63,216 nt of DNA, filler included, from Pelomyxa schiedti (GCA_020536535.1; 15 parts of 15 records of this genome joined end to end with filler, not necessarily neighbours in it), one strand, 5' to 3'. Counted from the first letter of the whole stretch, positions 3,543 through 45,278 are shown. Notes: a model not told the origin generated them from the letters alone. Translations and numbers: made by a program.

Positions 3543-4522
3543 GGATGGGGATCAAAAAAAATTTCCATTGGTTTTTACACATGATGTGCAGGGGAGTATG
3601 AGTCACACTCACAACAAACAAGGTTGCTGAGTTATTCTGGGCTGCCCAGACTGTCATTGACAATGTAAGTGAATCATCACCATGGATCCAACCAGTCAAA
3701 GCAAGATCGCACCTGAATTTAGATTAGTTCTCCTAAAAAGATCGGGGGAAGAGCAGCATAAACACGAAGCACGCACCACTGCCGGGTATTTGGCAAGAAG
3801 ATCGGCAACATGAGATGCCTCCCGCTCGGAAAGAAGACGGAAGTCAACGGCATTTATTATCCTCACTCTATCGGCATTCTTCCGCTGAATTCCGCACAGC
3901 CGTGCGTGTATTGTATGTATTCGCCTCCCTTCATTGTGGAATAGTACGAGTTTTGATCACTCGCTTTTTTGTTAGATAATTCAAGTGATAGAAAAAAAGG
4001 AAATACATGGCAGGTTTCAAGAGGAATAGAAACTGTGAGTTGATAACAGATGGCTGGACAAACCACCGCATTTCCAGTTAGATTCAACAAAACCATAGAC
4101 TGGCTCAACAGAGCATCTTGACACCATTTGTGACAAAACAACATACAACAAATAGGCAAATCGACAGAACGTTTAAAAATTCCCCTCTGCCCAAACAACA
4201 TAGCATCAGCAGATGCACCCCGCCAAAAGGAAAACTGGGGCCACCACACCACATACCAAACTTGAACATTTGCCGTAAGTGCAGAGTTGGCAACATAAAA
4301 CATCTTGCACCACACCACCCATACACGCGTCCCCCACCGCGTTTTACTCAATGCAACATCTCCAAGTTTTTGTTCTTCAAAATTGAAGTGTGCTGTGATT
4401 GTTTGAGGACGCGTTTGTGGCACTAAGGTTGGGATGAACCTTCACACATTAGTCTCTGGTGAGTCCAAGTCAGGAAACCCAAAGCAAACCAAAAACAACA
4501 ATTGAAAGCAACCCATCATCAA

Positions 4523-4622
4523 ATGGCCACCGCAAGCGCGGGCAGTGAGGTTGGGCGATGGGAGTGGTTCGATGCCGTGTATCAAGGCGACATCGACACA
4601 ATGCGGGTTCTTCTGGACGGCG
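4523..4622 (+). CDS. N-terminal fragment of an ankyrin-repeat protein, cut by contig end
   Basis: MATASAGSEVGRWEWFDAVYQGDIDTMRVLLDG aligns with EWFRAAHRGDTDTLRRLLAG of the genes at 30590 and 33049. Confidence 0.6.
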
Positions 4623-4722
4623 NNNNNNNNNNNNNNNNNNNNNNNNNNNNNNNNNNNNNNNNNNNNTTAATTAATTAANNNNNNNNNNNNNNNNNNNNNN
4701 NNNNNNNNNNNNNNNNNNNNNN
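4623..4722. other. Artificial contig linker (N-TTAATTAATTAA-N, stops in all six frames)
   Basis: The same 100-nt linker also starts at ~11289, 13587, 28285, 29778, 45279, 47641, 50733, 54731, 55974, 58286, 59529, 60937 and 62089. Plain 100-N gaps start at 1614, 8767, 32240 and 42068. Confidence 0.97.
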
Positions 4723-4732
4723 AGTTGGGTGT

Positions 4733-10700: not shown

Positions 10701-11166
10701 GCATTGATTTCAAAAAGAAAAACTCAGTCTAGCAGCCACGCAACTCGAGGAGCCTCAGGAGCATGTAAATGAAAAACGGAGCGTTGTCAAACAAGTAACT
10801 TCCATATCTGGAGCCGTGTCCCGACAGCGTGCCCAAATACCTCACCGCGGTCAACAACCCCCCGATGATCCACGACACGTGCTCTCCGAATTGTGGGTTG
10901 GTCTTGTTCTCGTTCCACTCGTCGAACTCGTTGAGCAGCCTGAACACCTTCCTGGTGAAATTCGTGTCCAACGGAGTCGTGGTCACGACCAACTGCAAGT
11001 TTATGTCCTCCAGCGGCGGAAGCGTCGTGATGTATTTGGCGACAAGGTCCGATATTCCCACCCCAAGCAACCAGTGCAGTTGCGTTGCGGCGTCGTCGGG
11101 CCCCGTAGTTCCTTTGTGCCGCGCGAATCGGCCGATGACGGACAGGCGGTCCACCAGGCGGTCCAT
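4733..11166 (-). CDS. Large multi-exon protein: unknown helical N-terminus, coiled coil, C-terminal Ser/Thr kinase with PINK1-like motifs
   Basis: ORF 4733-6799 carries NGSFG, VAVKMMFNYS, HCDIKSDNILL, DLG, GN..NRSPEV and KNDVWAVG. Upstream minus-strand ORF pieces separated by short GT-AG introns run back to MDRLVDRL at 11166. Internal exon boundaries were not fully resolved. Confidence 0.7.
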
Positions 11167-11388
11167 CGTTGGGACTGCCCAAGTGTGCACACTTTTTATC
11201 GGGTTTATTAGTTTTCTCAGTCCAGAGACGAGGAACTGAGACGGAAAAAAAAGGCGTTTTCTACAAGACCATCGGCCACGGGGTGCAANNNNNNNNNNNN
11301 NNNNNNNNNNNNNNNNNNNNNNNNNNNNNNNNTTAATTAATTAANNNNNNNNNNNNNNNNNNNNNNNNNNNNNNNNNNNNNNNNNNNN

Positions 11389-11519
11389 GCGCTGCCGCCG
11401 CGGCGCCGCGCCAACCGCCCCGCGGCACAAAACATCAACAAATCCCGGCAAAATCGGGCCGCTTCGCCCTGCCTTGCTCACTAAAAAATTCTGTTTTTCT
11501 CATTTGACTCGCCCCGGTG
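11389..11519 (-). repeat. GC-rich dispersed repeat terminus (putative DNA transposon end), copy 1
   Basis: The reverse complement matches 36151-36285 and, with a deletion, 27043-27110. The end is flanked by TA. Confidence 0.75.
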
Positions 11520-12789: not shown

Positions 12790-13466
12790 ACTGGTGTCGA
12801 CCAAAGGAAGCTCGATGCCTCTGAGTATGGGAGTGAATGGCTCTCCCTGGCCTCCACAGTGACTCCAGCACTACAACTCTTCTCGAGGTCAACAAATGAT
12901 ATGAAGGCTCCCCCCTCGCTGCCACTACCCCTCTCTCCGATAAGGACAACTTCATCACCACAAGGATAAAATGGAGAGAACCGTGCTCCATCGTTTCTCG
13001 GTCGCAAGGAGGTGCATCTCACAACAGTTGCGTGGGACGGGCACACGGGCACACCGTTGTTCATCCTGTACACAACCAGGTTCTTCGCTGCATTGACCTT
13101 CACAAGCCACTTTCCGTTGGTTCTCCAAACAGGGTACTTGTCCACCTCCCCGTCACCAAGCGTTGCCACCACGTTCCCCCTGCTGTCGACGACACACGAA
13201 GGTTTCAGCTCATCACACATTAACCTGTCATCACCCACGGTCACTGTGATGCACCCAGACGCCCGATAGTCGAGGCACGTGCACCACACCACGCCAAGTG
13301 TTGCGCTCACACCAATGAACACATTCACCTGCTCGAGGGACCACTCGGGCTCCATCTCATCGGAATCGGCATCGGCACGTGGTACAGGGAGAATGATGGT
13401 GGTGCCGACCTGCCGGCAACAACCGACGACCCAGTCGCGGCCGAACGACTCGCACAGCGCCCGATT
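12790..13466 (-). pseudogene. Family X paralogue, truncated at both ends
   Basis: Aligns with 11633-12778 from NRALCESFGRDWV to LWSTP. The 5' end is replaced by a repeat at 13467; the 3' end abuts the stop of the + strand paralogue. Confidence 0.7.
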
Positions 13467-13586
13467 GTGAAAGTGATGACTTCCCGAAAAAGGGAATCAC
13501 AGAGTCAGCCCTGAGCAACCCTCAGAAGTCGGACCACTTCTGGGAATTCAATGGCACATGACGCTGTGCTGTGCGTCCACTGAATA
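13467..13586 (+). repeat. Short dispersed repeat (SINE/LINE 3'-end-like), copy cut by contig end
   Basis: Matches the reverse complements of 42989-43179 and 37107-37240. Confidence 0.7.
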
Positions 13587-13686
13587 NNNNNNNNNNNNNN
13601 NNNNNNNNNNNNNNNNNNNNNNNNNNNNNNTTAATTAATTAANNNNNNNNNNNNNNNNNNNNNNNNNNNNNNNNNNNNNNNNNNNN

Positions 13687-15200
13687 CGCTGCACTGAAAA
13701 ACAGCATTGGAATTGTTGAAATCAATTTGAACAGCATTGGAATTGCTGAACTTAGCAGCAGGCCTAGGAGAGCCAATTAGTTATTTGTTTTGGAGTGCAG
13801 GAAGGAACCTGTGGTGTTGAGGAGGTTGTCTTGTCCAGTTTGGACAAGAAGGAAAACTTGTCATTGGACGACCCTATACTAGACTGCATGCACCATTTCG
13901 TGATGGATGCACAGCCTGAGAGATCTGCACCAAGCCAGAATCTATGAGCCAACATTCATATCATCTGGAGGCACCAGAATCTTCTGCATGAAGTTAATTT
14001 GGCATCTCTGAAGAGAATGGTGTTACCTTGCTCAAATCAAGATGTCCTGAGGAATTTCTGGCAATTCTGACACCAAGTCTGCACACAGCATAGGTGCAAA
14101 TTCGAGAACAGCACTGCACACACAGGAGGCACCTGGAAGCGTGGGAAATGCTAAAACGCCAGCAAGGAAACCAAGGCAAGGAAGCCACAATTGCATATAT
14201 TCACCAAGCAAGGAAATTGCTCAAAATCCTTCATTTTCAAATTGGACCTATTTCTTGAGTTAGAGGAAATCTCTGAGGAGCTGAACATACCTATATTTGT
14301 CAAGAATCTGAAGCTCATCAACGAGAGCACTGCAAGCAATCTAGCACTTGCTCTAGGACCGCCATGAGCAAGAATAATCTGAGGTGGCCAACACATCATT
14401 TCCAAGCATCTGCACAAGCGCTGGACACTGCAATGCACAAGTGAGATCAATATATACTCTTATGGAAATTGCACATACCTGGAAAAGCAAATGCTGCAAG
14501 CCAGACACTGTTCAATTCAGCTGAGAGCAGCAAGCAAATCATTGTCAACGCCAAGGCAATGGCATCTATCTGTATCTTATGTACTTATACAAAGGGTAGG
14601 AGCAAACCTAATTCAGCAAAACGCAAGAAGCACATCAGCACAGCTCAAGGCATGCTAGAGCATTCAAGCTGCACAAGCTAGGAGCAGTTGGCAACAACAG
14701 CAGTCTTTGCTATCTTCGCCATGAGTAAGAAATCATCTTATGGAAAATGGAACCATACCTGGGAACAATTCATGCTTGCAATTCATTCAAGCTAGAAGCT
14801 GGCAGCGCAGACTTCAAGGAGAACACCCAGACCAAGCACTGCAAGGAGCAGACAGCATCCCAACAACTGCAGAACGAATTGGCAAGTCAGCTTCAAAGTC
14901 ACTTCAAGCCTGGAAATGTAATCAGCCCAATTTCAAGAGTCCCTTGTTCTGTCAAAAGTCAGATGCAGAACAGCAACTATTATGGACTTACCTAAAGGCT
15001 CTAGGCATGCATACAGAGCACTTTCTGAGGTGCAGGAGATATCAGCATCAATCCTTATGACACACCTGTGTGCTGTCGCCAAGAGGAAATTCATGTGGTG
15101 ATGCAAGGCAATTTATCTTAGGAGTGATAAGGTAGTAGCTAAGGAAGAATTGACACACCTGAGCATGCATTGAGCACTGGTGGAAATGAGGAGCATTCTC
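13687..15200 (+). mobile_element. Decayed retroelement remnant, probably DIRS-like
   Basis: LHIPGKANAA at 14469 resembles the RNase H HIPGxxN motif. 14238-14380 recurs at 22041-22185 and, inverted, at ~24800-24890. Many stops. Confidence 0.5.
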
Positions 15201-15219
15201 CTGGGGCAAAGGTGCTGTA

Positions 15220-15445
15220 AACGAAAAAGAAACAGAACGGAAAGGAAGAAACAGAAAGGAACGATACGGAAAGGAAAGAAACAGAAAGGAACGAAACGGA
15301 AAGGAAAGGAAAGAAACAGAAAGGAACGAAACGGAAAGGAAAAGAAAGAAACAGAAAGGAAAGGAACGGAACGGAACGAAACAAAACGGCAACACGAAAC
15401 AATGAAACGACGAAACGAAACGAAACTACAAACGAAACGAAACCT
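15220..15445. repeat. Purine-rich low-complexity tandem repeat (GAAA/CGAAA/GGAAA units)
   Basis: Directly visible. Confidence 0.9.
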
Positions 15446-15499
15446 TGTGTCGCTTATCCGGATGTCCCCACACACCGGCACCATCAAAAAACGAAAATG

Positions 15500-17200
15500 T
15501 TTTTTCAGGAATTTAACCCCTCGAGTGTCAACAGTTCACCAGAACCTGCCAGATCTTTGCAACAAACAAGCAAGAATGTTGTCTTAGTTGTTGGGTTGTA
15601 GAACTTCTTTACTTTCCAGCCATATACCAAAGCTGTACCAAAAGACCATTGAAGAATACTCTGCGCTGGTGTTATTATGATGACTGCGAAAAAAGTCGCG
15701 GCAAGCTTGCCATTGGAACCTTGTGTTGGGAGCTGGTTACCACTGGCGCCGCAGCAACGGATGCTGCCGTCCAGGTGCCCACGGCATCCCCAGCCACCAC
15801 CCCAACGCCAACGCGCCGGCCATAGCTCCCCGGCAGCCTCTGGCCGACCGTGGCCTGCACTGGCGTGGTGATCCCAGAAGAAAGTGCCAGATTGTTCCCA
15901 CTAACCAGCTGGTTTTTCTGGGTCGCAGTACTTATGGGAACGGTTTCCCATTTTTGAAGCCCGTCAGCTACTGCCAGAAAAAAGCTTACTGTTCCGTTCT
16001 AGACTCCTATGGGACTTCCGCAGCAGTACCGCTGTGCAATAATGGACGGAGCACGGGATAAAAAAATGGGAAACCCACACCCACGCCCACATCTGAGTGA
16101 ACGCTACTTATTGTATGTTGTATGTTGTATGTTGTTTGTTGGCTGTCACTTGCTGTTGCTGTTCAAAATGATTTGCTGTTTTTTGTGGGTTTGTGGTTGC
16201 GTTTTATTAAATGTGGGAATCCTGCTTCCTTATGTTGTATTTATGTTTGTCTTTAATCCTGTACTGCACTCCTTGGCAAGAAAGTGAATAATGTTTCCTT
16301 TAGCGGAGAATCCAAGCAAGCTTAAAAGGTAAACTATAGGAACTTAGAACAGCATTGTATAAAGTTCCTGTACCATTGTTGGTTGCATGGGTACACTATA
16401 ACAAGGATGAGTAAACTTTGGGAGAGGAACTTGTATTTATCTGGCCACTGAGTTAGGTTGTATGACAACAATAAGCAAGTTGTTACCGATGCTCGCTCAA
16501 TCCAGTGTGGAAATGATGGGGCATCTAATAGCCGGCAAATATTTCCGAAATGACAAAGGCGGCAATGCTAGATTGAAATTATCTAAAGCTGCGTATTATT
16601 AGACAACTGTGCCTATGCATTGTATTTATTGAGTGTTTTATTAACCAGTTAACGCCGTTGAAACACATAGAAATTTTCAGGTTTTACCTGATAGATATGT
16701 CTTTTTTCGAGTGGGAATTGCTGAGCTCAAAGGGATTTTCGGAAGAGTGACAATAATATATTAATAGCTATTATATAGACCAGAATCTGGCACAAAGTCA
16801 GTGTGGAATCTCTGAAGAGAATGGCATTAACTAACCTGAAGAATCTGCACCAAGTCACCATGTGGAAATGGTTCTGCAATTGGATGAGTCCTTGCACAAC
16901 TGGGAGTTGAGTCAGTAAAACCAAAGCCAATGTTCAGCGCAATGTTTATTGGGAATAGTGCCAACATGGTGCTAAAACATCGCTGCTGCTGGCCCCCCAC
17001 ATCTGATTGAATATATCTGCGTTTTGTTAGCAGTTAATGTGTTGAAGTACTGGTTCACTGCACCGGAAATGGCAAATTCTTGTTGAACATGGCACAGGCA
17101 GAGATGTGGGAATGGGGTTTCTTAGAGAAATGAGCTATATTTTAAAAGAACAACTGTTTCAAACCTTGGAAGGGTCTGGTTATGTCTTTAAGTAATTCTG
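15500..17200 (+). mobile_element. Decayed DIRS-like reverse transcriptase/RNase H
   Basis: YYDD at 15673, then GVVIPEE/KCQIVPTNQLVFLG (~15865-15923, frameshifted), then VVTDA at ~16480. The order matches DIRS RT-RH. Confidence 0.6.
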
Positions 17201-29877: not shown

Positions 29878-30058
29878 CGCATGATAAAGTGCGTGCCGTG
29901 CGCGAGTGAGTAATGATCGTGCGTGTTACATCGGACGTGTGGTCCCTCAGCGGGATCTTACGATTAAGCAAACGCCAACGCGAACAACAACACACACAGA
30001 CACACCCGGGTGGTCCGACGACGATCAACTTAAAATCACTGCCTTTGTCCGCTGCCAT
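29878..30058 (-). CDS. Ras-superfamily small GTPase, first exon fragment
   Basis: MAADKGSDFKLIVVGPPG is the start of a P-loop; it is followed by a probable intron and the contig end. Confidence 0.55.
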
Positions 30059-30589
30059 GTTGTTTGTTGTGTGAAAAACTATGTTTAAAAACCAATTTGT
30101 TTTTTCTGTGATCTGATCACAATCGATCCAACTAGTCAGGTTAGGGGCACTGTGATGCCTGTTCCACAGATTCATGAATAAACAAGCTCTCACTTGAGCA
30201 AAGACAATTTTCTCTTTTAAAACTACACGTGTTGAAACACACGTGTTGTGTGATTCAGTAGAATACATCATTTAAGTCCTGCAAGGAAGACCAGGGATCC
30301 CTATTGTGATTAGTGACATGCGTACTGACTGTGGGTAGTTTCTCTCTGTCCCTTGATTTTTTTGTTTGAAAAGGCTGTCCTTAGTCTTTCACAGTTTGAT
30401 GAACCACTGTGGGACACATTTCTGAAACTGACTTTCGGTGGACATGTGCATTCCGAGTTCCAGGGCACCAACCGTTGAATGTTTCAAGCAGCACCACAAG
30501 ACTTGACTGAGGTGTCAAGTTCGTCAGGAATTTTGATTTCTTCGACTTGAACGATCCAAATTGTAGTTCAACAACAGTCTCCAACAACC

Positions 30590-32239
30590 ATGGCGACAAC
30601 AACGACAAAGTCACGCAACGTGACCAGGGAGTGGTTCCGCGCCGCGCATCGCGGCGACACCGACACACTGCGGCGTCTGCTTGCCGGCGACCACGACCTA
30701 CTAAACTCTGTGAACGACGAACGACAACGAGTGGTGCGAATGCGTTTGCGCGATATTAATTCGTTTTGTGTGCACCCACACACGCAGACAGCGTTGCATG
30801 CAGCCACGTGGGGAGGGGAACCGCGGTGCGTTGAGTTCCTGTTGTCAATGAATATCGATGTCAATTCTCAGGTATTCCCTCATTTTTATGTACAAACTCA
30901 CAAACTTTACCTCTCACTTCACAGATTGTGTGTAATACCCATCTGATTATGTTTACATTCCCTTTCCTCTAAAAACGTAAATCTAGGGGAAGCCTGTATG
31001 TTACTGCCATAAACCTCCATCCTTCCAATTTATTTATTCATCAATTTCTTACTTGCTTCAATTTCTCTCCTTGCTTCAATACGTGCCCCGTTTAGGATGT
31101 GTGCCACTGCCCCCACCCTTTTTATTGCGTTTATTCATCAATTTCTCTCCTTCCTTCAATATGCGATGAATTCAGGGAGTGTGTAACTGCCCCCACCCTT
31201 TTTATTGCGTTTATTCATCAATTTCTGACTTGCTTCAATTTCTCTCCTTGCTTCAATGCGTGCCACATTTAGCTTGTGTGTAACTGTCCCCACCCTTTTT
31301 ATTGCATTTATTCATCAATTTCTGACTTGCTTCAATTTCTCTCCTTGCTTAAATATGTGATGAATTCAGGGAGTGTGTAACTGCCCCCACCCTTTTTATT
31401 GCGTTTATTCATCAATTTCTGACTTCCTTCAACTTCTATGTGACACGATATCATTTTTCTACCTCTATTGTTGGACAATTGTGCCTTTATTGGCCACCAG
31501 GGAGTAAGTAAACACTCCCTGCAACTTTTTGTTCTGACTTTTTCGGGATTTTCACTATTTTGCACTGCAGATTGTATCACTCACTCTTTGGTTCTCTCTT
31601 TACTTAACTCTTTTATTATCAGCAAGTATGCACAGTTTTATTGTTATTCTCTTCCTCTATCTTATCTTTTCTTGGGGCTTTCTCTCAAATGAAAGGGTGA
31701 TGTATGTGAATGTCCTGTTTTTCTTTCCTTTATTAATTTTCTCTCTCTCAGACCGCACTTCACCTTGCCTGCCAGAAGGGAAATGTTGAAATTGTGAAAC
31801 AACTTGTGGGTACTGGCACCACAAACATCAAGGTCCCCCCCCCCATGTTGATTTGTATATGTGTTGTAATTTTTTCCTGTTGGAAAAAAATAGAACACAG
31901 AGGGAAAAACACCTGTGGAGTACTCCCAGAATGATGAAATGCGGCAACTGTTCCAATCTGTGTGTTGCACAATTCCTGTTGCCACAACAACCAAAACAAA
32001 AACAAAAACAACAACAACACAGAAAGTCCCCACTCCCAAAACAGCACAACTGCATCCTCCACCGTCTGCAACTCCTCCCATGTCTCAACCACCCATCGTC
32101 ATCACCACCCTGGAACAGCTCCACAATCTCGTCGCCCATGATTTGTTATCTTCATTCCCATTGCCTCCTCCAAACAAACCATCATCATCCCCACCACCAC
32201 CACCATTGAAGACACCTCCTTCCACGGTTCTGTCCAAAG
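30590..32239 (+). CDS. Ankyrin-repeat protein with microexon cassette, paralogue A (3' part lost in the gap)
   Basis: Predicted exons: 30590-30733, 30788-30871, ten microexons within 30925-31701, 31752-31832, and 31894 to the gap. Two TALH ankyrin motifs plus GKTP. Confidence 0.8.
30996..31440 (+). repeat. Minisatellite of ~80-100-nt intron+codon units (paralogue A)
   Basis: Unit: GTGTGTAACTGCCCCCACCCTTTTTATTGC...AG followed by 3 nt. Confidence 0.9.
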
Positions 32240-32339
32240 NNNNNNNNNNNNNNNNNNNNNNNNNNNNNNNNNNNNNNNNNNNNNNNNNNNNNNNNNNNNN
32301 NNNNNNNNNNNNNNNNNNNNNNNNNNNNNNNNNNNNNNN

Positions 32340-32663
32340 CGCCTCCTCCACCACCACCTCCTCCTGCTCCTCGGGCATCGCCGTCGTGGCCCTCGCTGCC
32401 GCCGCGTAGCGGCTACTGCTGCTGCTGCTCGCACTCGCGGTCGCAGTCGTAGTAGTAGTACTCGTAGCGGGGGTGGTTGTTGTTGGTGGTGGTGTTGTTG
32501 CAGCGGGGGTGGGGGGCGGAGGTGGTGGTGGGGGTGGGGCGGAGAAGAGGAGTGCGAGGGAGACGGCGCTGAGGCACCGTGGCACGCTGCCCACAGCTGC
32601 AGCGGCGTCCACCGTGTTGTGGTCGTACTTGTCTTTGCGGGGAAGTGTTCCCAGGGACAGCAT
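32340..32663 (-). CDS. Hypothetical Pro/Thr/Ala-rich protein, N-terminal fragment
   Basis: GC-rich ORF from the ATG at 32663 running into the gap. Confidence 0.45.
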
Positions 32664-33048
32664 GGCTCGGGGCGGAAACCTTATTTTGCTCGATCTGGCA
32701 GAGCCCCAGTCGAAATTTGACGAACAATGACAAGGTGATGGTTACTTGTGCCGCAAGGTGTGGAATGAATTACTCTATAAAACCCCTCCCCCCTCTCCTT
32801 AGGGAAATTAATTTCTAGAAAACAAAGCTACCGTCTCCCTAGAAGGAGATGAAAGTTGTTTTCTTTTTTTAGAGTGTAGGATGAGGTGGAGATGTGAATT
32901 CCGAGTTCCAGGGCACCAACAGTTGAATGTTTCAAGCAACACCACAAGACTTGACGGAGTTGGCAAGTTCGTACAGAAATTTTGATTTCCTCGACTTGAA
33001 CGATCCAAATTGCAGCTATCTCCAGGGCAACAACAGTCTCCGACAACC

Positions 33049-36000
33049 ATGGCGACAACAACGACAAAGTCACGCAACGGGCCACGCGTGGGACCCAAGG
33101 AGTGGTTCCGCGCCGCGCATGGCGGCGACACCGACGCACTGCGGCGTCTGCTTGCCGGCGACCGCGACCTACTAAACTCTGTGAACGACGAACGACAACG
33201 AGTGGTGCGAATGCGTAACAACTCTTTTTTTTTTTTTTTCCCGCGCGATATTAATTCGTTTTGTGTGCACACACACACACACGCAGACAGCGTTGCATGC
33301 AGCCACGTGGGGAGGGAAACCGCGGTGCGTTGAGTTCCTGTTGTCAATGAATATCGATGTCAATTCTCAGGTATGCCCTCATTTTTATGTACAAACTCAC
33401 AAACTTTACCTCTCACTTCACAGATTGTGTGTAATACCCATCTGATTATGTTTACATTCCCTTTCCTCTAAAAACGTAAATCTAGGGGATGCCTGTATGT
33501 TACTGCCATAAACCTCCATCCTTCCAATTTGTTTATTCATTAATTTCTTACTTGCTTCAATTTCTCTCCTTGCTTCAATGCGTGCCCCGTTTAGCTTGTG
33601 TGTAACTGCCCCCACCCTTTTTATTGCGTTTATTCATCAATTTCTCTCCTTGCTTCAATGCGTGCCCCGTTAGTCTGTGTGTAACTGTCCCCACCCTTTT
33701 TATTGTGTTTATGCATCAATTTCTTACTTGCTTCAATTTCTCTCCTTGCTTCAATGCGTGCCCCGTTTAGCTTGTGTGTAACTGCCCCCACCCTTTTTAT
33801 TGCATTTATTCATCAATTTCTTACTTGCTTCAATTTCTCTCCTTGCTTCAATATGTGCCGCGTTTAGCCTGTGTGTAACTGTCCCCACCCTTTTTATTGC
33901 ATTTATTCAGCAATTTCTTACTTGCTTCAATTTCTATGTGTGCATTTATTCATCAATTTCTTACTTCTTTCAACTTCTATGTGACACTATATCATTTTTC
34001 TACCTCTATTGTTGGACAATTGTGCCTTTATTGGCCACCAGGGAGTAAGTAAACACTCCCTGCAACTTTTTGTTCTGACTTTTTCGGGATTTTCACTATT
34101 TTGCACTGCAGATTGTATCACTCACTCTTTGGTTCTCTCTTTACTTAACTCTTTTATTATCAGGAAGTATGCACAGTTTTATTGTTATTCTCTTCCTCTA
34201 TCTTATCTTTTCTTGGGCTTTCTCTCTCAAATGAAAGGGTGATGTATGTGAATGTCCTGTTTTTCTTTCCTTTATTAATTTTCTCTCTCTCAGACCGCAC
34301 TTCACCTTGCCTGCCGAAAGGGAAATGTTGAAATTGTGAAACAACTTGTGGGTACTGGCACCACAAACATCAAGGTGTTCCCCCCCCATGTTGATTTGTA
34401 TATGTGTTGTAATTTTTTCCTGTTGGAAAAAAATAGAACACCGAGGGAAAAACACCTGTGGAGTACTCCCAGAATGATGAAATGCGGCAACTGTTCCAAT
34501 CTGTGTGGAGCACAATTCCTGTTGCCACAACAACCAAAACAACAACACAGAAAGTCCCCACTCCCAAAACAGCACAACTGCATCCTCCAGCGTCTGCAAC
34601 TCCTCCCATGTCTCAACCACCCATCGCCATCACCACCCTGGAACAACTCCACAATCTCGTCGCCCATGATTTGTTATCTTCATTCCCATTGCCTCCTCCA
34701 AACAAACCATCATCATCCCCACCACCACCACCATTGAAGACACCTCCTTCCACGGTTCTGTCCAAAGCTGCTGAAGATGGCATCAACAACCTTGGGAAAC
34801 AAGGCACAACCGTGGAGGCATCGGTTCTCATGCTGGTCACTGACCAATTGTCACAAACCCTGTCAACCCTCCTTGACCAGCAGAAAGTTCACCAAGGCAA
34901 TGCAGAAAAGGTCGCCGTGCAAGTTGAAGTCACAGGGAACCAAGTGGAACAGGCACAGGCACAGGTGCAAGAACTGGAGCGCAAGCTCGCACAAGCAAGG
35001 CAACTGCTTGGTGCAACAACGCAGGCCAACACACTGGCAAAGAAGCAACTTGATGAGTCCAGAGAGCTCACTGCCACCATCACCCGGAACATCTCCATGG
35101 TGCACGAAAAGCAGGAGGCTCTTGAGCGCAAATTGGCCTCCGTGCGAAAGGTTCTGTCCTCTCTGAGCCAGAAAGCAAGCACGCGAAACCTGCTGCAGTT
35201 TAACGTTGAGGACATCGGCTGCTTGCTCTGTGACCTGGGTCTCCAGAAGCATGCTGACAAGTTCAGCTTGAACGAAGTCGATGGTGAAGTCTTTCTGGAA
35301 CTGAACAAGGCAGGACTGGAGGAGCTTGGGGTCACTCAGAGAGCTGAGCAGGACCTTCTATACCATACAAGGGCAATGATAACTCATTGCGGTGCAATTC
35401 GCGCACCATCGGCCTCTGACGCGGGGGGCACAGACGCTGCTGCATCGTGGGACGTGAACGAAGTTGCAAGCTGGTTGGAATCCCAAGGAATACCTCCCCA
35501 AGCCATCACGTGGTTCCGCGAGATGGGAATAACAGGAATCTCGCTGCTTTACATGGAGGCGCAAGAAATAAGCAGTGTTCCAGGTCTCCCATTCGGGCCC
35601 CGGCACAAGCTCCTGAAGAGAATTGGAGAGCTCAAGTCCGCAGTTTACACTCCAAGAAATCCCCGAGCACCTTCATCCTCCGGTTTGTGCTTATCTTGTT
35701 GAACCATAACCACTTTCAACTGACCAAAACAACCAAGGACCTGGTCACACAGCAGCCGCACCATCGAGCATCCCTTTGGCTGTTCCGGCACCACTTGAAT
35801 TCCTCTGCCCAATCACGTGTGACTTGATGAACACTCCCGTTGTTGCTGCCGATGGGTGTGTTTCGCGAACGGGTTTACAATTCCTGCGTCTCTAACACTC
35901 AACTCGTAGATACTGTTATGAGAAGACCGCGATTGAGGAGTGGCTGAGGAAGCACAACACATCGCCGATGACCAACGCTGCTCTTTCCAGCAAAGCGTTG

Positions 36001-36063
36001 GTGGCCTGTCACACCCTCCGCAGTGTTATTCTCGACTGGAAGAAAGCCAACAACATCCCATAA
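33049..36063 (+). CDS. Ankyrin - coiled coil - SAM - SAM - U-box E3 ubiquitin ligase with microexon cassette, paralogue B
   Basis: Predicted exons: 33049-33204, 33287-33370, ten microexons within 33424-34243, 34294-34374, 34437-35682, ~35738-35855, ~35910-36063. SAM motifs: FSLNEVDGEVFLEL..LEELGV and WDVNEVASWLES..GITGISLL. U-box: EFLCPITCDLMNTPVVAADGYCYEKTAIEEWL..SPMTN. Confidence 0.88.
33495..33985 (+). repeat. Minisatellite of intron+codon units (paralogue B)
   Basis: Same unit as 30996-31440, with different 3-nt spacers. Confidence 0.9.
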
Positions 36064-36150
36064 ACCAACCCAAACATCCCATGCCCCCAGAATAACTGGG
36101 GGCCAAATAATCCAATTTCATGTTAGAGAAAGTGCCTTGTTGTTGGCTTA

Positions 36151-36900
36151 CACCGGGGGGCGAGTCAAGTGAGAAAAACAGAATTTTTTAGTGAGCAAGG
36201 CAGGGTGAAGCGGCCCGATTTTGCCGGGATTTGTTGATGTTTTGTGCCGCGGGGCGGTTGGCGCGGCGCCGCGGCGGGGCAGCGCGGCGTGTGTGTTCGT
36301 TGAATCGGGTCTCGCCGCGGCTGCGCGGCCTTGACATAAATGGCATGTTTGGGGTTGCGGAGACTGTGCGGTGACTTGCCTCTTTGTTTATCTCCACACC
36401 ATCAAAAAAATCGCTGCTACGAGGGGAGACCATGCCGCCCTGGGGTGAAGAGGAACAAGCGGTACCCGCCTTGTGTCTTCCATCACGTCGTGCCATCTAA
36501 TATTAATTGTTTTATTTCTGAATCAATTAAATTAATTTATATATATATTAAATATTTATATTTTATTTATTAATTAAGCATTTATTATTAATTTAATTAA
36601 AAGTAATTTTTTACGCATTTACGCCTTGTAATAAGGTAATAAGGCCTACAGCATTGCCGCACCCCTTTAATGTATTTCCGAGCCTTCACTGGTATGTGGC
36701 TTCTTGTTTCTTTGTTTTCTTTTTCCCATAGCACTGGGACACTGGTATGCTTTTTTTTTTTTTTTTTTTTTTTACACTTAGGTGGTCAACTTGCCTGCCG
36801 CTGCTGACATGACAACCACCAACGTACATCCTTCTCCTTTTTTGTCATTGCTGAACAGTTGTAGGTACCGGACTGACCAACCCCAACTTCCCTAACCCAC
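36151..36900 (+). mobile_element. Putative DNA transposon: shared terminus plus internal region
   Basis: TA|CACCGGGG terminus matches 11519 and 27043. The right boundary is uncertain. Confidence 0.5.
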
Positions 36901-37106
36901 TCTCCCGCTTTTCCGCTTTCCAACTACCACACTTTACTGTGACGGGTGCACAACCAGGCCCAAATTTCCCTTCTTACTCTTTCACTCTCATGTGTACCCA
37001 CAACGCCCACTTCTCTCCAAAATGTGGATTTACAACGTGGCATGTGAGTATACTGACAGGGAGTGACAGATGTGTTCGTACTGAAGCAAGATAAAGAGGA
37101 AACAAA

Positions 37107-37240
37107 GTATTTTAGTTGATCTGGTGAAGGTGTGGTTACAGTGTGCATCGCTCAAAAGCCCAGGTTCTTCCCATGAATTCCAGGTATCCAGTGGACCCAC
37201 AGCACAGCATCACGTGTCATTGAATTCCCAGAAGTTGTCG
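37107..37240 (-). repeat. Short dispersed repeat with A-rich 3' end, 5'-truncated copy
   Basis: Matches 42989-43135. Confidence 0.75.
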
Positions 37241-38430
37241 GAAGAGAGCGCAAACAAGAGGGAGGGGTGTTAGTGCCGAGGTGAAGTGGGTGGAGGCGGA
37301 AGTAAAGCCTGAACATTGTTCAACCACGTGCAGACATGATGTGAGCGGGGCACTGGTCACTGTGGAGCACATCTTCCACCACCTGGCTGCCTCCCTCTCG
37401 TCCTTGTATGATCCTTCAATCCTGTTGTTGTTGTTGTGCTGACCAGCTTTCTTCCCATACACCTGTGCAATCTTCAGGATCACATTGAATTTGTCCTCAA
37501 CTTGGGTTGGTTGTCCTGGCTGGCAAACAGTGCGAGGTGGAACAGCCTCAGTGCTCCTTTGTGTCCCTCCTCACTCCGGCTCCTTCCCAGTGCATCAACC
37601 CCAATGTTCCAAAGCTTCCTGGAGATTGTAAACACTGCGCACTTTGCAGTACACGTCTGCGAGGTGCATGCTGGCATCGAAGCAGCCCTGTGCTTCGGCC
37701 AACTTGAGAAGCCTCACAGCCTCGATGGGCTTGTCATGTGCAACAATGGCAGCAAGGTTCATTTGTGCTTCAGCATCTCCTTTCGCGGCAGCAAACCTCA
37801 TCAGTCTCAGGCCCTCAGCTTTGTTCATTGGAGCTTCTGCTTGTCCCCTTCACCGAGATACATCATTCCAAGCTCCCTCTGAGCGGGGCAGTAACCAAGT
37901 GAGGCCGCTTTCTTGACGTTGTTGAACCCACCAACGGCTGTCAGTGCTCGTGGATCGCCACCTTGTGCTGCCATTCCCACGTGGAACTGGCTTCTGTCTC
38001 TATCAGTGAACTCGAACAAGACATTCTTGCAGAAGGAGTACATTGGGTAGCCTGTGTCCAGCACAAAGCCCAAGAAGAAGTGGCAGAATGACCTCACTTT
38101 CTCAGGATATCTTTTGTCCCCACATGATGAACCAAGGAATGGACCATCCATTCCTGCGACGTGGAATTGCACGTCGCGGCGCAGTGGAGCAACTCGTCCC
38201 ACAAGTACATCTCGGGCCGCCGACTGCGAGCAAAAAGCTTCGGCGCCGATCGGAACAGAAACCCCAGCATCACGTGGGCAAATGCGCGCGCGTCGGGCGT
38301 GCTTGGCGTCGGCTGCCAAACTCCGCAGCAGATCGCAGCACCTCTGAAATTCACTTTCCACGTACAAGCGCAGGCACTCACTCGCGATCTCGCTCGTCGT
38401 GTCGTTTTTTCCACGCGACGCGGCATCGTG
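37241..38430 (-). pseudogene. SEL1-like repeat protein, frameshifted paralogue
   Basis: Aligns with 38558-39874 (GDPRALTAVGGF, KAASLG, AAKGDAEAQ, EAARWWK) but is split over several frames. Confidence 0.75.
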
Positions 38431-38557
38431 TTTACTCGGCCGAAAGAAAAGTTTAGCAGTAAAAAAAAAGTGATCACTATGACGAAAAAGGAAAAAAAAT
38501 TCACTTGGTAAAGTAAGACTCTGCTGCTCACCACCTCTTATTGTTCCACAGGCTTAT

Positions 38558-39874
38558 TCAATGGCTGAGTAGCACAGTTTTGGAAGGCTTGAGGTGGTGG
38601 ATGACCAGTTTACTGACTTGCTCAGTGTCTCGGAAAAAGCAAAAATTCAGCACAATCCGAGAGGGGCACTTGTCAGAGTTGAGCATCAGCTTCCACCACC
38701 TTGCAGCCTCCCTCGCGTCCTTGTACCCATCAGGGGCCCCCCTCCCTTCCTCGTACAGCTTTGCAATGTCGGCCACCAGGGTGAACTTGTACTCGATTGG
38801 ACTGTTCTGGAGGGCCGCCCATGCCAGGTGGTACAGCCTCATTCCCTCCTTTGTGTCCCTCTTCAAGCCAGAAACTCCAAACCAGGTCAGCCTTGCCAGT
38901 GTGCAAAAGGCTGTGGCCCACTCTGCAGGGTCACTGCTCTCGCGGCCTTCCTTCCACTTGTTGAACACTGGCTCTGCCATTTTCAGGAGGCGAATTCCCT
39001 CAGGGAGGTTGTGGACACATTCAGGGCCCGAGATGTACAGTCCTGCCAGTCCAATCTCTGCATCAACGTATCCTTGTGCTGCTGCCAGCTTGAAAAGCTT
39101 CACAGCCTCGACAGGGTTTTGGTTTTGGATGTATATCTTTGCAAGAAATGTTTGTGCCATTGCATCACCTTTCTCAACCGCAATCCTAAGCAGCTTCATT
39201 CCCTCCGTTGCATTCAATGGCACCTTGGGGCCTCCTGGGTACTCTGCCCCGTGGAGGTACATCATTCCAAGGTTCCTCTGAGCAGTGCAGAAACCAAGTG
39301 AGGCCGCCTTCTTGACGTTCTGGAACCCACCAACGGCTGTGAGTGCCCTTGGGTCGCCACTCTGTGCAGATACTTCTGCGTGAAAAGAGCTCTGTTCCTC
39401 GCTTGTGAATGGGAAGTCACCATAATCTTTGCCCAGAACCATGGCCAAGAAGTAGTGACAAAATGCCTTCACCTTTTTCCCACCACAACTGTTGTTGTCC
39501 CCATCACAAACAGAATGCACCAAATTTACCATCCATTTTTGGGCCCTTGAGTCACACCCCGCAGCACGCCGATGGAACTCGTCCCACAAGTACGTCTCGA
39601 ACGGCTGACTGTGCGCGAAAAGCTTCGGGTCGGCCTGGAACAAGAACGCCAGCATTACGTTGCCGAAAGCCCGCGAGTCGTCGTCCTCGTCCGCCAACGA
39701 GCACGCGAGGCGGTGGAACCGACGCAGATCGCTTTCAGCGAACAGCCGCAGGCACTCCTTCGCTGCCGCGCTCGTCGCCGCGTCGTCGTCGGGGTTGCTC
39801 TGAGCCGACACCGCCTTCACGTCGTTGTGCTTCTTTGTTTTACGCGTGCAGTCACGTCCTGCCTTTTTGCCCAT
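38558..39874 (-). CDS. SEL1-like repeat protein (438 aa)
   Basis: SEL1 consensus matches: AQRNLGMMYLHG, AVEKGDAMAQTFLAKIY, AAAQGYVDAEIGLAGLY, LYEEGRG..D.REAARWW. Confidence 0.85.
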   Translation of the reverse strand: MGKKAGRDCTRKTKKHNDVKAVSAQSNPDDDAATSAAAKECLRLFAESDLRRFHRLACSLADEDDDSRAFGNVMLAFLFQADPKLFAHSQPFETYLWDEFHRRAAGCDSRAQKWMVNLVHSVCDGDNNSCGGKKVKAFCHYFLAMVLGKDYGDFPFTSEEQSSFHAEVSAQSGDPRALTAVGGFQNVKKAASLGFCTAQRNLGMMYLHGAEYPGGPKVPLNATEGMKLLRIAVEKGDAMAQTFLAKIYIQNQNPVEAVKLFKLAAAQGYVDAEIGLAGLYISGPECVHNLPEGIRLLKMAEPVFNKWKEGRESSDPAEWATAFCTLARLTWFGVSGLKRDTKEGMRLYHLAWAALQNSPIEYKFTLVADIAKLYEEGRGAPDGYKDAREAARWWKLMLNSDKCPSRIVLNFCFFRDTEQVSKLVIHHLKPSKTVLLSH

Positions 39875-40017
39875 TTGCTCCCTTCCACCTTTGTCGAGAA
39901 AAAGAATGACGACCCGGTACTACAACCATTGAGTCCCGTGGGGAATGCTGATGTAAGCATTCCTGGAAGCAAAGTTTGATTCAGAACAAAAACAACGAAA
40001 GCTGCGATAGACGAACC

Positions 40018-42893
40018 ATGTTGTCTCCGCCCAAACCCGCAGCCAAACAAATTATTGTGTTGGGTGCTGAATGCAATGCAGGGCAGGTAACATATTTCCA
40101 AGTGTTTCTACAAAGAATATTTGCCGGCGTTGCGCCAATTTATGAGTTCGTTGATGTGATGTTGCAGAATAAACTAGTGAAAGCACTTGTGGGACTGCAC
40201 CAGGGACCAGATGAACCAGTTCAGATCCCATGTGCGAGAGTTGGGAAGGATGCCCGCATTTGGAGTATGCAGTGGATGTCAAATGGTTTTTTTTTTAAGT
40301 TTAGTTTTTTTTTTTGCTAATGGGCATTTCAAGACGAACTTCTGGCTGTCAACTTGAATGGTTGAGTGTCTATTTGTTTGGTTTCTGATAACCCTCAAAC
40401 AAAATGCACAACAGATGTTTCCGAAATGTGGGTCTGGGATTGGACAAGGTACTTTGTTTTCTCCGATGCAGTTGTCCTGTGCTTCCCACTTCACACAACC
40501 TACGGAGATTATTCCCTCAACCCTATTTCATTCCAGGTACCACTATTCCCTCCCCACAATCTTGTTTTTTCTTTAAACAGTTGTACATATGATCTGTTGT
40601 GCACCTTTGTTTATGTTTTCTGCAGTATTTTCCAGAAGTTTGGAACAAGAAACGGTTCACACCTATTTTTCTTGTTGGGATAAACGATCACCCAGAAAAG
40701 CCAGCATCTATTTCACGTAAACGGTGCATCAAGGTATTATTATCAAGCCACAGCAGCTTGTTTGCTTTCCTTATTGTCATTACATCTCACAACAACCCGC
40801 AGGAAGCAAAGAGAATTGGAGCTGTTTACTATCTTGAATTCAATACAACAACCCTTGGAGGAGTTAATGTACTCTTCAATGTACTGTTGCAAGCTCTCAC
40901 CAGAAAAATTGAAATCCATGGAGACAGATGGGAGCCTTTGGTTGGGATATCAGGCTACCCCGCTGGCTTTGACCTGTAACTATCTCAGTGATATCCTAAA
41001 AAAGGGTTCCCTGGATGATTCAAAAAAAAGGTGTGGCCATGTTTGCACTGTTTATTCAGATCGCCTCTACCTGTTCGGCGGTCGCAACAGAGGGGGACTT
41101 CGCTTCGAGGGGTATTATTTAGACCTCTCAGCATCTCAGGATTCCAACTGGGAACTAATCCTTGGCAAAGACGCACAGTTTCCTGAGTTCCCGGCATACT
41201 GCACTTCACAGAACGGCCAACTCGTTTATTTCTTTGGTGGAACAGATGTGTTACCCACTGAAGATTCACCGAGGATCTTTGATGCTGCCAAATCCCGAAT
41301 GGAAGCCATACAAGTGGCAAATCCATCAGAATCCCCACCACGAAGTTACGGTGGAACTCTCGTGATGTATGTGTGACTCCCCTCAAACTTGAAATACCGT
41401 AATCGGGAATTCCCAGTCATGACAACAAACTGTACTTGTTTGGAGGCTCTGTTTCAGGATGGGCCACTGATGGTTTTTATGGTACCTCCCCAATTCCCAT
41501 TCTGTACTTCCACTGACCTCACATCACCACAACAGAGTTCAATCTGGCAACGAAGATTTGGAAGGAATTGCCCCCACAAGGACGTTTTCCACAAGTGCGA
41601 TACCATCACAGTTCATATTGCAAGTATCTTACTCTCATCACTTTCAAGAATTGACTGATTCAATTTATTCCCCAGAAACGGAGTGATGGTGATTCTCTGT
41701 GGACTTGGAAACAATCGTGACAAATACAACGATGTTTGGAGTGTAGACCTTTCCAAGGCATCGGCCGAAGGAAAAGCAACGTGGAATCTGATTCCGTGCC
41801 GTGGAACACCACCAACACCCCAAAGAGGCCACGCTGGGTGTTTGTTGAACAATGACTCCTTCATGTTCGTTGGCTCTTCAAACGCGAACCCACAATGTGA
41901 GTTTTTTCAGTATGTTTTCCCTGCCAACATATTTTGGTTGGCTACAACAACACACAGTTTTGATACAAACACATTCACTTGGAAGGAGATGGAAATGCAA
42001 ATGTCTCCATTTTCGAGAGAGGTCAGCCCTTTGTTTTCTTCTGCGTTTTTGACATTCTCACAGTTCTNNNNNNNNNNNNNNNNNNNNNNNNNNNNNNNNN
42101 NNNNNNNNNNNNNNNNNNNNNNNNNNNNNNNNNNNNNNNNNNNNNNNNNNNNNNNNNNNNNNNNNNNACAACACACAGTTTTGATACAAACACATTCACT
42201 TGGAAGGAGATGGAAATGCAAATGTCTCCATTTTCGAGAGAGGTCAGCCCTTTGTTTTCTTCTGCGTTTTTGACATTCTCACAGTTCTTTGGGATCACTG
42301 CGTGGAGAAATCACATCATCATCACCAGTGGTATCATTCGTCGGGAAAGACCCGCGCTTTTGAGTGATGGGTACATTTCAGTCACGCCCTCACTCTTTCC
42401 AGAGACTCCGGCACAAGAGCAAGTTCCCAACACCATTACCTCTGATGGCACTTTTTCCGCATTTCAGGTTGCTCCACCAGACTGCTGGATGCAAGTGATT
42501 GCATTCTTGGATGTGGATGACATTTGCCGGCTGGGGCGAGTAATTTCCCCCTTCTTGGATTCCATTTAACGCCACCCGTTCAGGTATCAACGGAATTATA
42601 CCGCATCTGCTCCAGTGACGAAGTGTGGAAGAAATTTCTTCCTGTTGGTTTGCACAGGGGAACCGGCCTGAAGCCATTTTGTATGCACCCACCCCATAAA
42701 CACCACCCCATTTCATTTTGAGCTGATACCTCCTTACACAGGCGTTCCCGTGTGGAAGAATCCATTACCGCTGGTTCCCACAATCGTTCCGCAATACAGT
42801 GTATGCCGGTACCATCCCGAATTGATCATGTCCACTTACCATCACCACCTTCGACAGTGTCCAAGAATCCCGCGGTTCCCCGATTTCGAATGA
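40018..42893 (+). CDS. Degenerate Rho-like GTPase - Kelch repeats - F-box protein, multi-exon
   Basis: Rho-like: DAVVLCF, TPIFLVG, EAKRIGAVYYLE. Kelch: GHVCTV..LYLFGG, VYFFGG, KLYLFGG, RYHHS, YNDVW, RGHA. F-box-like: PPDCWMQVIAFLDVDDICRLGRVS..Y..C..DEVW. Confidence 0.75.
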
Positions 42894-42988
42894 TGACAAA
42901 TAGCAATACATGTCAGACATGCCCTTGGAGCAAAGTCAATTTGTTTTCAATTTGTAGTTAAGTGCTTCAAATCCCTTCACGAAAGAAA

Positions 42989-43179
42989 TATTTATTTATT
43001 TTAGTTGATCTGGTGAAGGTGTGGTTACAGTGTGCATCGCTTAAAAGCCCAGGTTCTTCCCATGAATTCCAAGTATCCAGTGGACGCACAGCACAGCACA
43101 ACATCACGTGTAACTGAATTCCCAGAAGTTGTCCGACTTCTGTGGGTCGCTCAGGGCCGACACTGTGATTCACTTTCAC
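42989..43179 (-). repeat. Short dispersed repeat ending in (TAAA)n
   Basis: The minus strand ends CCAGATCAACTAAAATAAATAAATA. Homologous to 13467 and 37107. Confidence 0.75.
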
Positions 43180-43388
43180 GACCCCGATCTCGTTGTCAAT
43201 TTGTAGTGACAACAGCCAGTGCTGTTCCAGCTTCTTTTTTTTAGACATCTAACAAAAGATTGGGTTTCAGGTCGAGGCTGTTACCATCCACTTGGTACTA
43301 TGTTAGTTTTCCTGAGGGATTGTTTTGATTGCAGTGTCTCCCAGATCAGCCGTTGGTGATTTCCAGTAAAAAACCTGTCGTTTGGGAG

Positions 43389-45278
43389 ATGTGGGGACCC
43401 GAGCATGCCGGCAAACGAATTATCGTGTTGGGTGACCAATGCCACGGAAGGGTACTTGTTTTCTATCCTTCTTTTTGGTTTTTTACTCTTGCTATTGTTT
43501 GTATGGCAATAATAATTCAAGAACTTCGTAAATAATATTACTGACCTCGAGGTTCGGGCTATAATTGATGCTTTGTGATGTTGCAGAATCAACTGGTGAG
43601 GGAACTTGTTGGACTGAACCAGGGACCAGATGAACCAGTTCAGAGCCTATGTGAGTATGGCACTTCCGCGTCAGCGAGTGGCAAGTGCAGCTGGAGCCTG
43701 CACTGGATGTCAAAGGGTAGGGTAGTTGTTTTTTGCCTTGCTTTTATTTTTTTTTTAATCTGCATATAGGTGAACTTGTGGCAGTCACATTGAATGGTTT
43801 GTGAGTGTTCGATTTCTGAGAAGGCACCACACTAACTCCCACCACACACACATACCCAAAGATGTATCCAACATGTGGGGTGATTGGTCGAGACCCAGGT
43901 CGTACACTGCGCATTCTGATGCAGCTGTTCTGTGCTTCTCACTTCATTCACCTTCTTCGATCGACTCTATTTCATCCCGGGTTCGATCCCCAATCTGTCC
44001 ATACCCTTCTTTTTCACATTTCTGCATTTTGTGCAGTGGTTCCCAGAAGTCTGGAACAACAAACGGTTCACACCTGTTTTTCTTGTTGGCATCAACGAAC
44101 ACCCAGAAAAGCCAACATTGATTCCGCGTCAACAGTGCATCCAGGTACAACACAACTTTTTTGATATACCACACAACAAATGACACGCACATAGGAAGCA
44201 AAGCGAATTGGCGCTGTTTACTATCTCGAATACAATGCAGCAAGTTCTGCTGGAGCCAATGTCTTATGCAACGTGCTCGTGCAAACTCTTGGGAGAAAAA
44301 TTGAGATACAAGGAGACAGATGGGAACCTTTTTCCGGGATCGGTGGCTACACTGGCGGCTTCGGCGTGTGTGTTTTCAACTCTCAATTATACTTTGTTAT
44401 CCTAACTTTTACAGGTATGGTCATGTTTGCACTGTTTGTGCAAATCGTCTCTATCTATTTGGTGGTCGTAGTAGAGACGGAGTTCACCCAAAGGGCTACT
44501 ATTTGGAACTTCCAGTATCACAGGATTCCGGATGGAAATGGAAATCAGTCGAGGGCAAAGCTCAGTTTCCTCCGTTTCCAGCATACTGCACTGCAATGAA
44601 CGGCCAACTCGTTTATTTCTTTGGTGGGTCATCTAATCTCCCTGATGAAAGTGCACTTATGGTCTTTGACACAACCAAGTCCCGTTTGGAAACCATTGTG
44701 CCAGCAAATTCAGCAAAAAAATCCCCACCAGAGAGTTACGGTGGAACCCTTGTGATGTATGCATGATCCCCCATTGGAATACAGCCTCTAATTGAAATTC
44801 TACAGCCACGAAAACAAACTGTATTTATTTGGTGGATCTGTTTCAGGTGTGGCCACTGGCGGTTTTTATGGTACCTCCCCAATTTCCATGATTTTCCCTG
44901 AGAGTACTTCAACTGACATTATGTCGCGGCAACAGAGTTCAATCTGATCAAGAAGGTTTGGAAGGAGCTGACCGCCAAAGGACGTGCTCCCCCGGAGCGA
45001 TTCCATCACAGCTCATATTGCAAGTATCATATAACCATCACTTTCGAGAATTGACTGATTCAATTCCAGAAACGGAGTGATGGTGATTCTCTGTGGACTT
45101 GGAAACAATCGTGACAAATACAACGACGTTTGGACTGTCGACCTCGCCAAGGCATCAGCCGAAGGAAAAGCAACGTGGAATCTGATTCCGTGCCGTGGAA
45201 CACCACCAACACCCCAAAGAGGCCACGCTGGGTGTTTGTTGAACAATGACTCCTTCATGTTCGTTGGCTCTTCAAACG
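43389..45278 (+). CDS. Tandem paralogue of the Rho-like/Kelch gene, 3'-partial
   Basis: Same exon order and motifs (RIIVLGDQ, DAAVLCFS, TPVFLVG, YGHVCTV..LYLFGG); cut by contig end. Confidence 0.75.

Follow-up and report, generated by a model that had tools for sequence, protein, structure and literature searches.

The question raised by this locus is whether the 923 nt that lie between two ankyrin exons of a predicted ubiquitin ligase gene from Pelomyxa schiedti are spliced as a run of codon-sized exons, and if so whether these exons are joined in many combinations, such that one gene would yield many versions of a single loop. P. schiedti is a free-living, anaerobic amoeba whose genome (GCA_020536535.1) was obtained by single-cell sequencing, with gene calls from Augustus, PASA and EVM (PMC8887013). 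In the window (the whole stretch of DNA analysed, 63,216 nt), positions 29878-45278 represent one 15.4-kb contig of this genome, and the stretch 34458-35684, in a long exon, is 100% identical to Pelo_4155 (P0001, 617 aa).

Pelo_4155 lies on the plus strand and consists of six ordinary exons with ten microexons between exons 2 and 3. Exon 1 (33049..33204; P0001) holds the start codon and the first, capping ankyrin repeat, and is followed by an intron (33205-33286) that is removed in RNA runs X1 and X2. Exon 2 (33287..33370; Pfam Ank E=1.2e-5, covered by an X1 RNA contig) is a 28-codon ankyrin repeat that ends with Q in phase 0, while exon 3 (34294..34374; Pfam Ank E=7.2e-7) encodes a further repeat that starts with TALH. 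Both of these array-flanking exons begin at Pfam Ank position 4, and the alignment bears out an earlier sequence-only reading of the locus in that the upstream exon supplies 28 of the 33 residues of a repeat. Exon 4 (34437..35682; Pfam, RNA contigs) encodes the ankyrin C-cap, a Pro/Thr linker, a coiled coil and two SAM domains (SAM_1 E=5.9e-16, SAM_2 E=1e-14; the coiled-coil matches are weak), and exons 5-6 (35738-35855 and 35910-36063) encode the U-box and the stop codon, with a Pfam U-box match on each and both introns removed in RNA. From N- to C-terminus the protein thus comprises ankyrin module, linker, coiled coil, SAM domains and U-box. The U-box is complete in the expressed frame (Pfam positions 2-21 and 25-72 over exons 5-6), and by its domain content Pelo_4155 is a predicted U-box E3 ubiquitin ligase, as had been proposed, with the coiled coil and the two SAM domains to be added to that description. 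The domain search returned only Ank, SAM, U-box and coiled coil, with no NACHT or other ATPase, and by eye the N-terminus is polar and without a signal-peptide-like stretch. A pseudogene is ruled out by the open frames and by the removal in RNA of all four ordinary introns. The microexons account for 39 of the ~1,880 coding nt.

The intervening segment (33371-34293) can be parsed as ten microexons of 3, 9, 3, 3, 3, 3, 3, 3, 3 and 6 nt, flanked and separated by eleven GT..AG introns that measure 49-171 nt. All ten had been called before from the sequence with the positions and letters that we find, and checking confirmed that each is a multiple of three, in phase 0 and without a stop codon; against the 50-130-nt spacing suggested there for a genome scan, one intron is 171 nt long. 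When all are included they read IGMPLSLPGIEGD. Microexon 1 (ATT, Ile; 33424..33426) is spliced in RNA, as described below, and microexon 2 (9 nt, GMP; 33486..33494) has an acceptor used in RNA, is present in the NCBI model and recurs in paralogs. Microexons 3-6 (CTT 33595, TCT 33674, CTT 33771 and CCT 33868; 33595..33870) are recognized by the tandem repeat and by exon/intron divergence, each being one codon in a 79-97 bp tandem unit; three of the four are preceded, at a distance of 45 nt, by a branch-point-like CTKAC. Microexon 7 (GGA, Gly; 34042..34044) has a strong GTAAGT donor and a slot kept in paralogs, microexon 8 (ATT, Ile; 34112..34114) occupies a slot that is I or T in paralogs, and microexon 9 (GAA, Glu; 34164..34166) one that is E or Q in paralogs and K in a decayed copy. 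Microexon 10 (6 nt, Gly-Asp; 34238..34243) is present in the NCBI model and in a paralog RNA contig whose loose end falls at 34294; it gives the ankyrin G-x ahead of TALH and is invariant among paralogs at the protein level.

The segment contains only 16 AG dinucleotides, ten of which open microexons and one of which is the final acceptor; four others lie in or just after a microexon or donor, and the last (33909) lies in a partnerless partial duplication of 43 nt. AG-NNN-GT occurs nine times compared with 1.0 in dinucleotide shuffles (maximum 5 in 2000), a contrast that is inflated because 4/9 of the motifs sit in the 79-97 bp tandem repeat. Across the seven complete arrays of the gene family, an acceptor, 3 nt and a donor follow each other at 9.3/kb versus 0.14/kb in 170 kb of other Pelomyxa DNA (both strands), a 66-fold difference. 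Moreover, among acceptor-to-donor lengths in these seven arrays only 3, 6 and 9 are enriched and 4, 5, 7, 8 and 10-12 are absent, which fits what frame-neutral skipping requires. Chance or a repeat artefact as the source of the array is ruled out by motif density, codon divergence, the stop-free units and the RNA joint.

The RNA evidence comes from assembled contigs, which lose rare variants, of three single-cell RNA runs from one sample in one study. A 352-nt contig of run X1 matches exon 1 with 0 differences to Pelo_4155, lacks intron 1, and continues through exon 2 and ATT to position 33486, that is, with ATT between 33370 and 33486 (depth 7.5). Its length (178+85+3+86) and the bin depth show that it reads on into the intron after microexon 2. 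Both introns flanking a 3-nt exon were therefore removed precisely, in a partly spliced molecule, and the donor after microexon 1 was cut at the first GT of GTGTGT. Genomic DNA in the RNA library is ruled out as the source of this joint, since the joint of exon 2, ATT and microexon 2 is missing from DNA run X4 and both introns are uncovered in X1 RNA. Another contig of run X1, which belongs to a paralog outside the retrieved loci, runs from a pyrimidine tract and AAG through the Gly-Asp hexamer directly into the TALH exon, at a place where all genomic copies examined have an intron; here the last microexon is seen joined to TALH in RNA. In both informative contigs splicing is incomplete, inner introns being retained. 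Among the contigs listed for the three RNA runs we found no bridge from exon 2 to exon 3, direct or with an insert, and no spliced tandem-unit exon of the microexon 3-6 type, and unspliced, intron-containing RNA across the tandem units is present in all three; since rare variants are lost on assembly, these contigs are compatible both with combinatorial skipping and with its absence. Summed DNA-run contig depth over the unit (window 33500-33940) is 2,000-11,500 compared with 100-350 elsewhere, which is not a copy number; together with the unspliced unit RNA it suggests many more genomic units than were retrieved, and frequent intron retention.

Further evidence on the units comes from comparing them with each other. 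In the regular arrays (L006, L007, L008 and that of Pelo_4155), introns are ~5% divergent versus 44-57% for the three exon bases. Pairwise diversity among units is 0.66 at codon position 1, 0.71 at position 2 and 0.38 at position 3, and 0.00 at the AG and GT, where the random maximum is 0.75; these pairwise values, like the Fisher test given below, take related units as independent, partly reflect whole-unit replacement, and are descriptions, not probabilities. Leaving out the slots L001:8274, L002:9805 (a 9-nt exon) and L002:10433 (a false call), 78 units contain 0 stop codons and 0 codons with GT, and use Gly only as GGA, a pattern that fits amino acid selection together with avoidance of internal donors. 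The residues (G17, Y12, L10, I8, D7, P6, F6, N5, H4, S3) are led by Gly (22%) and Tyr (15%), and one residue may be repeated in an array (Leu five times in L006, Pro five times in L007). A CTKAC branch-point-like motif lies 43-53 nt upstream of nearly all unit acceptors tested. With introns ~95% alike, codon positions 1-2 near saturation, AG/GT fixed and no stops, these data point to diversifying selection on the coded residue. The microexons are real, as the sequence-only reading had it; they are coding, with diversification at the first two codon positions, and RNA junctions support the first two in Pelo_4155 and the last in a paralog.

The array is one of a family. Two array-bearing loci lie in the window and nine more came from homolog search and locus retrieval, all eleven in P. 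schiedti; seven arrays are complete, with 10, 10, 11, 19, 19, 19 and 25 slots, and of the other four loci one is decayed, one deleted and two are truncated at contig ends. The layout is constant: an I/T slot, a 9-nt exon, 4 to 20 one-codon units of ~100 bp, then G, I/T, E/Q and GD. The 9-nt slot, whose middle codon is variable, reads GMP, GKP, GAP, GVP, GEP, GPA, GKA or ELP, and the G slot near the array end has a strong donor across the family. Array length changes in the middle, through gain and loss of the ~100-bp tandem units, which are homogenised within each gene: in young arrays unit likeness is 0.91-0.95 within genes and 0.71-0.89 between genes. Gly units have a distinct acceptor sequence common to paralogs, and with the within-gene likeness this suggests that arrays grow by unequal exchange and that units travel as cassettes. 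In the old, diverged arrays of L001 and L003 (75-79% unit identity) every AG-NNN-GT is kept, whereas the decayed copy (L001:16666-17816) has lost some, together with acceptors. At L004:6495-6930 (Pelo_6014), microexons 1-2 are followed by the middle of exon 4, the array and third repeat being gone through deletion or misassembly.

The paralog in the same window, Pelo_4154 (copy 1; 30590..32239, plus strand), ends at an N gap and has the same ten slots as Pelo_4155; its array (30925-31701) reads I, GKP, D, G, L, G, G, I, Q, GD. The two differ at 10/39 microexon bases versus 36/841 intron bases (Fisher p=1e-5), a contrast that is partly whole-unit replacement and not point change. Copy 1 (30437-32239) and copy 2 (32885-34767) are 90% identical over 1.9 kb, including ~150 nt upstream. 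The P. schiedti assembly was scaffolded using RNA pairs (PMC8887013), and their tandem placement may therefore be a scaffolding join across the N gap at 32240-32339. Beside this gap a Pro/Thr-rich open frame on the minus strand (32340-32663) enters the Ns and has no Pfam match.

What follows the ankyrin module differs between family members. SAM-SAM-U-box lies downstream in Pelo_4155, 6819 and 16390, SAM-SAM in Pelo_6824, and U-box alone in the decayed copy, whereas at L006 it is a coiled coil and protein kinase, annotated with a start inside an open frame that runs on from the ankyrin exons. Tying the array to a ubiquitin ligase was thus too narrow; the module is a sensor of the whole family, also fused to a kinase. 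Most array genes are split in two at the array by the NCBI annotation, and its models include GMP and GD in Pelo_4155 and GKP only in Pelo_4154, which we do not count as evidence for skipping because they are possibly ab initio. Clusters of ankyrin-kinase genes lie beside array genes (L001:1-7568 and 13286-16213; L003:1-2376); a scan of these adjoining clusters found no microexon arrays, and they are a possible source of the kinase effector.

Where the array falls in the protein can be read from an AlphaFold model of the ankyrin part of the NCBI protein (pLDDT 96), in which the insert falls within the loop that joins helix 51-59 to helix 74-80; structurally the model is closest to DARPins with two internal repeats (TM 0.84-0.89). 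Judged by this model, the array encodes the predicted inter-repeat hairpin, second to third repeat, of a DARPin-like fold, which is where it had been placed before. Randomisation of the inter-repeat beta-turn is used in DARPin libraries, and LoopDARPins lengthen it. The comparison with DARPins and LoopDARPins lies in fold, size and variable residues on an inter-repeat loop; these are synthetic libraries, whose binding surfaces are formed by helix and loop residues, and they serve as an analogy for loop binding and not as relatives (PMC8048499; for LoopDARPins, Schilling 2014, as cited in PMC9873692). The Gly/Tyr-led vocabulary bears a resemblance to CDR-H3-style antibody libraries, where the same two residues lead (PMC9873692).

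Loop length can be set against 697 natural ankyrin repeat spacings, 52% of which are 33, 29% 34 and ~8% at least 37. An insert of five or six residues brings the spacing back to its usual value, and inclusion of all microexons gives 41 in Pelo_4155 and 56 in L003, which would be unusual since 33-34 makes up ~80% of natural spacings. As to how many loops are available, ordered subsets of the ten microexons of Pelo_4155 give 892 distinct peptides (fewer than the 1024 implied by an upper bound of 2^10 subsets), or 14 if only the four tandem units vary, and those of the 20 units of L003 about 242,000.

We consider it probable that, in addition to shuffling at the DNA level, the weak and mutually interchangeable units are joined by splicing in many different combinations. 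The array would then be a diversity cassette in a family of P. schiedti intracellular sensor-effector proteins, in which the hairpin between repeats 2 and 3 of a small DARPin-like ankyrin module is built from a run of phase-0 microexons. Middle units, with weak and near-identical donors (mostly GTGTGT after T), would be included or skipped in many combinations, and flanking slots would be included more often; those kept across paralogs (I, GxP, G, I, E, GD) may be partly constitutive. Each gene would produce a pool of loop variants, between 14 and 892 peptides for Pelo_4155 and >10^5 for the longest array, from two layers of diversity, namely unit shuffling in DNA between genes and alleles and the choice of subsets in RNA. 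Least secure is the function. The architecture, the precedents discussed below and the many prokaryotic endosymbionts of P. schiedti (PMC8887013) suggest that variants might bind proteins that are damaged or foreign, coming for instance from endosymbionts, prey or viruses, while the SAM domains and coiled coil might cluster the receptor and the U-box ubiquitinate or the kinase signal.

An alternative that we regard as rather unlikely is that all microexons are always included, each gene having one long, LoopDARPin-like loop of 13-28 aa, with diversity among paralogs and alleles instead of transcripts; the ~100-bp intron units would serve as recombination handles through which crossover and conversion add, delete or swap codons without frameshift. 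Within-gene unit likeness and the Gly-unit acceptors common to paralogs, as signs of cassette movement, agree with this, as does the sole RNA contig of an array start, which has microexons 1 and 2 in order and unskipped, and the all-slot loops, being Gly/Tyr/Asn-rich, are plausible as loops. However, it would demand up to 26 successive faultless splices over 3-nt exons with weak donors, and repeat spacings of 41-56 that would be rare in ankyrins; one invariant isoform should also yield a single contig, and no such contig appeared, a weak argument at low coverage. Less probable still is a restricted choice, in which one or a few units, mutually exclusive or limited by length, would give loops of ~5-6 residues (e.g. 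X-I-E-G-D, G-I-E-G-D or I-GMP-G-D) and tens of forms, not thousands. The last four slots amount to five residues, exactly the canonical gap, the NCBI model has five (GMP and GD), and 80% of natural spacings are 33-34, all as this would have it; but with ~50 nt from donor to branch in the units, and ordinary introns here of 49-62 nt, there is no steric block, and repeated identical codons in one array add nothing to a one-of-N choice and make little sense under it. Very hard to credit is a reading in which the middle units form an intronic minisatellite without coding function, only the outer slots being exons or the array mainly tuning expression via intron retention: unit introns are indeed present in the RNA of three runs with none seen spliced, and tandem amplification inflates motif counts, but variation is limited to the first two bases between fixed AG/GT, stop-free and avoiding GT, the unit donor context is that of the exactly spliced microexon 1, and the old arrays of L001 and L003 retain each AG-NNN-GT where the decayed copy does not.

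Codon-sized exons in an ankyrin sensor have their closest precedent, one named in the sequence-only reading, in the NACHT-ankyrin (nank) genes of the truffle Tuber melanosporum, which reviews report to be diversified by splicing tens of 3-bp exons in alternative ways (PMC4986451, PMC10197012, PMC13449251; original report Iotti et al. 2012). As there, we find an expanded ankyrin gene family with codon-sized exons in the sensor domain, a domain proposed in Tuber to belong to non-self receptors; such exons number 8 in Pelo_4155 and up to 23 in L003, and one 3-nt exon was seen spliced. In contrast to nank genes, which these reviews present as NLRs with NACHT and reported alternative splicing, the Pelomyxa genes encode no NACHT or other ATPase and thus fall outside the nank family, and they have a small N-terminal ankyrin module, SAM/U-box or kinase effectors, an amoebozoan host and ~100-bp tandem units. 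By analogy they probably work alike without being members, and the Pelomyxa arrays look like an independent, unannotated, non-NLR counterpart of the Tuber system in Amoebozoa. The micro-exon genes (MEGs) of Schistosoma share runs of symmetric, tiny, frame-preserving exons, and in the cited account their isoforms arise by exon skipping (PMC4015677). The symmetric 3n phase-0 microexons are common to both; however, the MEG proteins are described there as small and secreted, and microexons can take up as much as 75% of their coding sequence (PMC4015677), whereas the Pelomyxa microexons, mostly single codons, make up at most 6% of a cytosolic multidomain protein and are confined to a single loop within a folded domain. 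Brown algal ROCO-LRR and NB-ARC-TPR genes and Podospora HIC WD40/ANK NLRs likewise combine tandem units that are nearly identical with concerted evolution and with hypervariability at a few codons for ligand contacts, but these candidate immune receptors shuffle whole protein repeats (PMC13449251), and the Pelomyxa unit is ~97% intron and carries one codon.

Traits of an innate-immune repertoire are present in the family, with eleven loci, birth and decay (one decayed and one deleted copy) and codon hypervariability of the sensor. Whether it goes as far as an independent CDR3-like repertoire, with a Gly/Tyr-rich loop spliced codon by codon on a DARPin-like scaffold, ubiquitin-ligase and kinase outputs and ~10^5 peptides per gene, is a possibility that we hold seriously but slightly doubt; if true, each cell would have a somatically diversified pool of intracellular receptors, perhaps to manage endosymbionts or viruses. 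Each gene probably makes many differently shaped binders, something known before only from the truffle receptor family. If so, this would be the second reported ankyrin sensor spliced codon by codon, in another lineage, a non-NLR protein and a single-celled organism, and would point to convergent evolution of receptor diversification at the RNA level. The one-codon tandem units moreover show the origin and renewal of microexon arrays, and these genes offer a natural system in which to study how the spliceosome recognizes long runs of 3-nt exons.

Among the papers searched, none contained both 'microexon' and 'Pelomyxa'. Word-based searches for relatives outside P. schiedti returned only P. schiedti proteins or generic ankyrins, a HMMER search was uninformative because long multi-ankyrin proteins crowded its results, and two metagenome scans were empty; such searches are weak for split, intron-rich genes, and the negative results do not amount to evidence of absence from other Archamoebae. 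Since the arrays are missing from the public annotation, which also divides most of the genes in two, similar systems could hide in other intron-rich protist genomes.

Several other features were observed in the same contig. Downstream of Pelo_4155, 36471-37035 is 79% conserved beside the L001/L002 paralog and contains short segments that look like exons (one of ~13 nt lies near 36732); it may be a small multi-exon gene missing from the annotation. A 140-nt repeat (37108-37242 and 42997-43136) has 92% identity between its copies. On the minus strand, 37217-38367 and 38558-39874 are a related gene pair, 67% identical over 650 nt, the second with Sel1 repeats. An exact 121-nt duplicate (41947-42067 and 42168-42288) flanks an N gap and is an assembly overlap artefact. 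Finally, 40018-42900 and 43400-45278 are tandem copies with Kelch repeats that share 72% identity over 1.8 kb. On visual inspection there is an N-terminus resembling that of small GTPases and, near 42480-42540, a motif resembling an F-box; they are possibly further ubiquitin-pathway adaptors.
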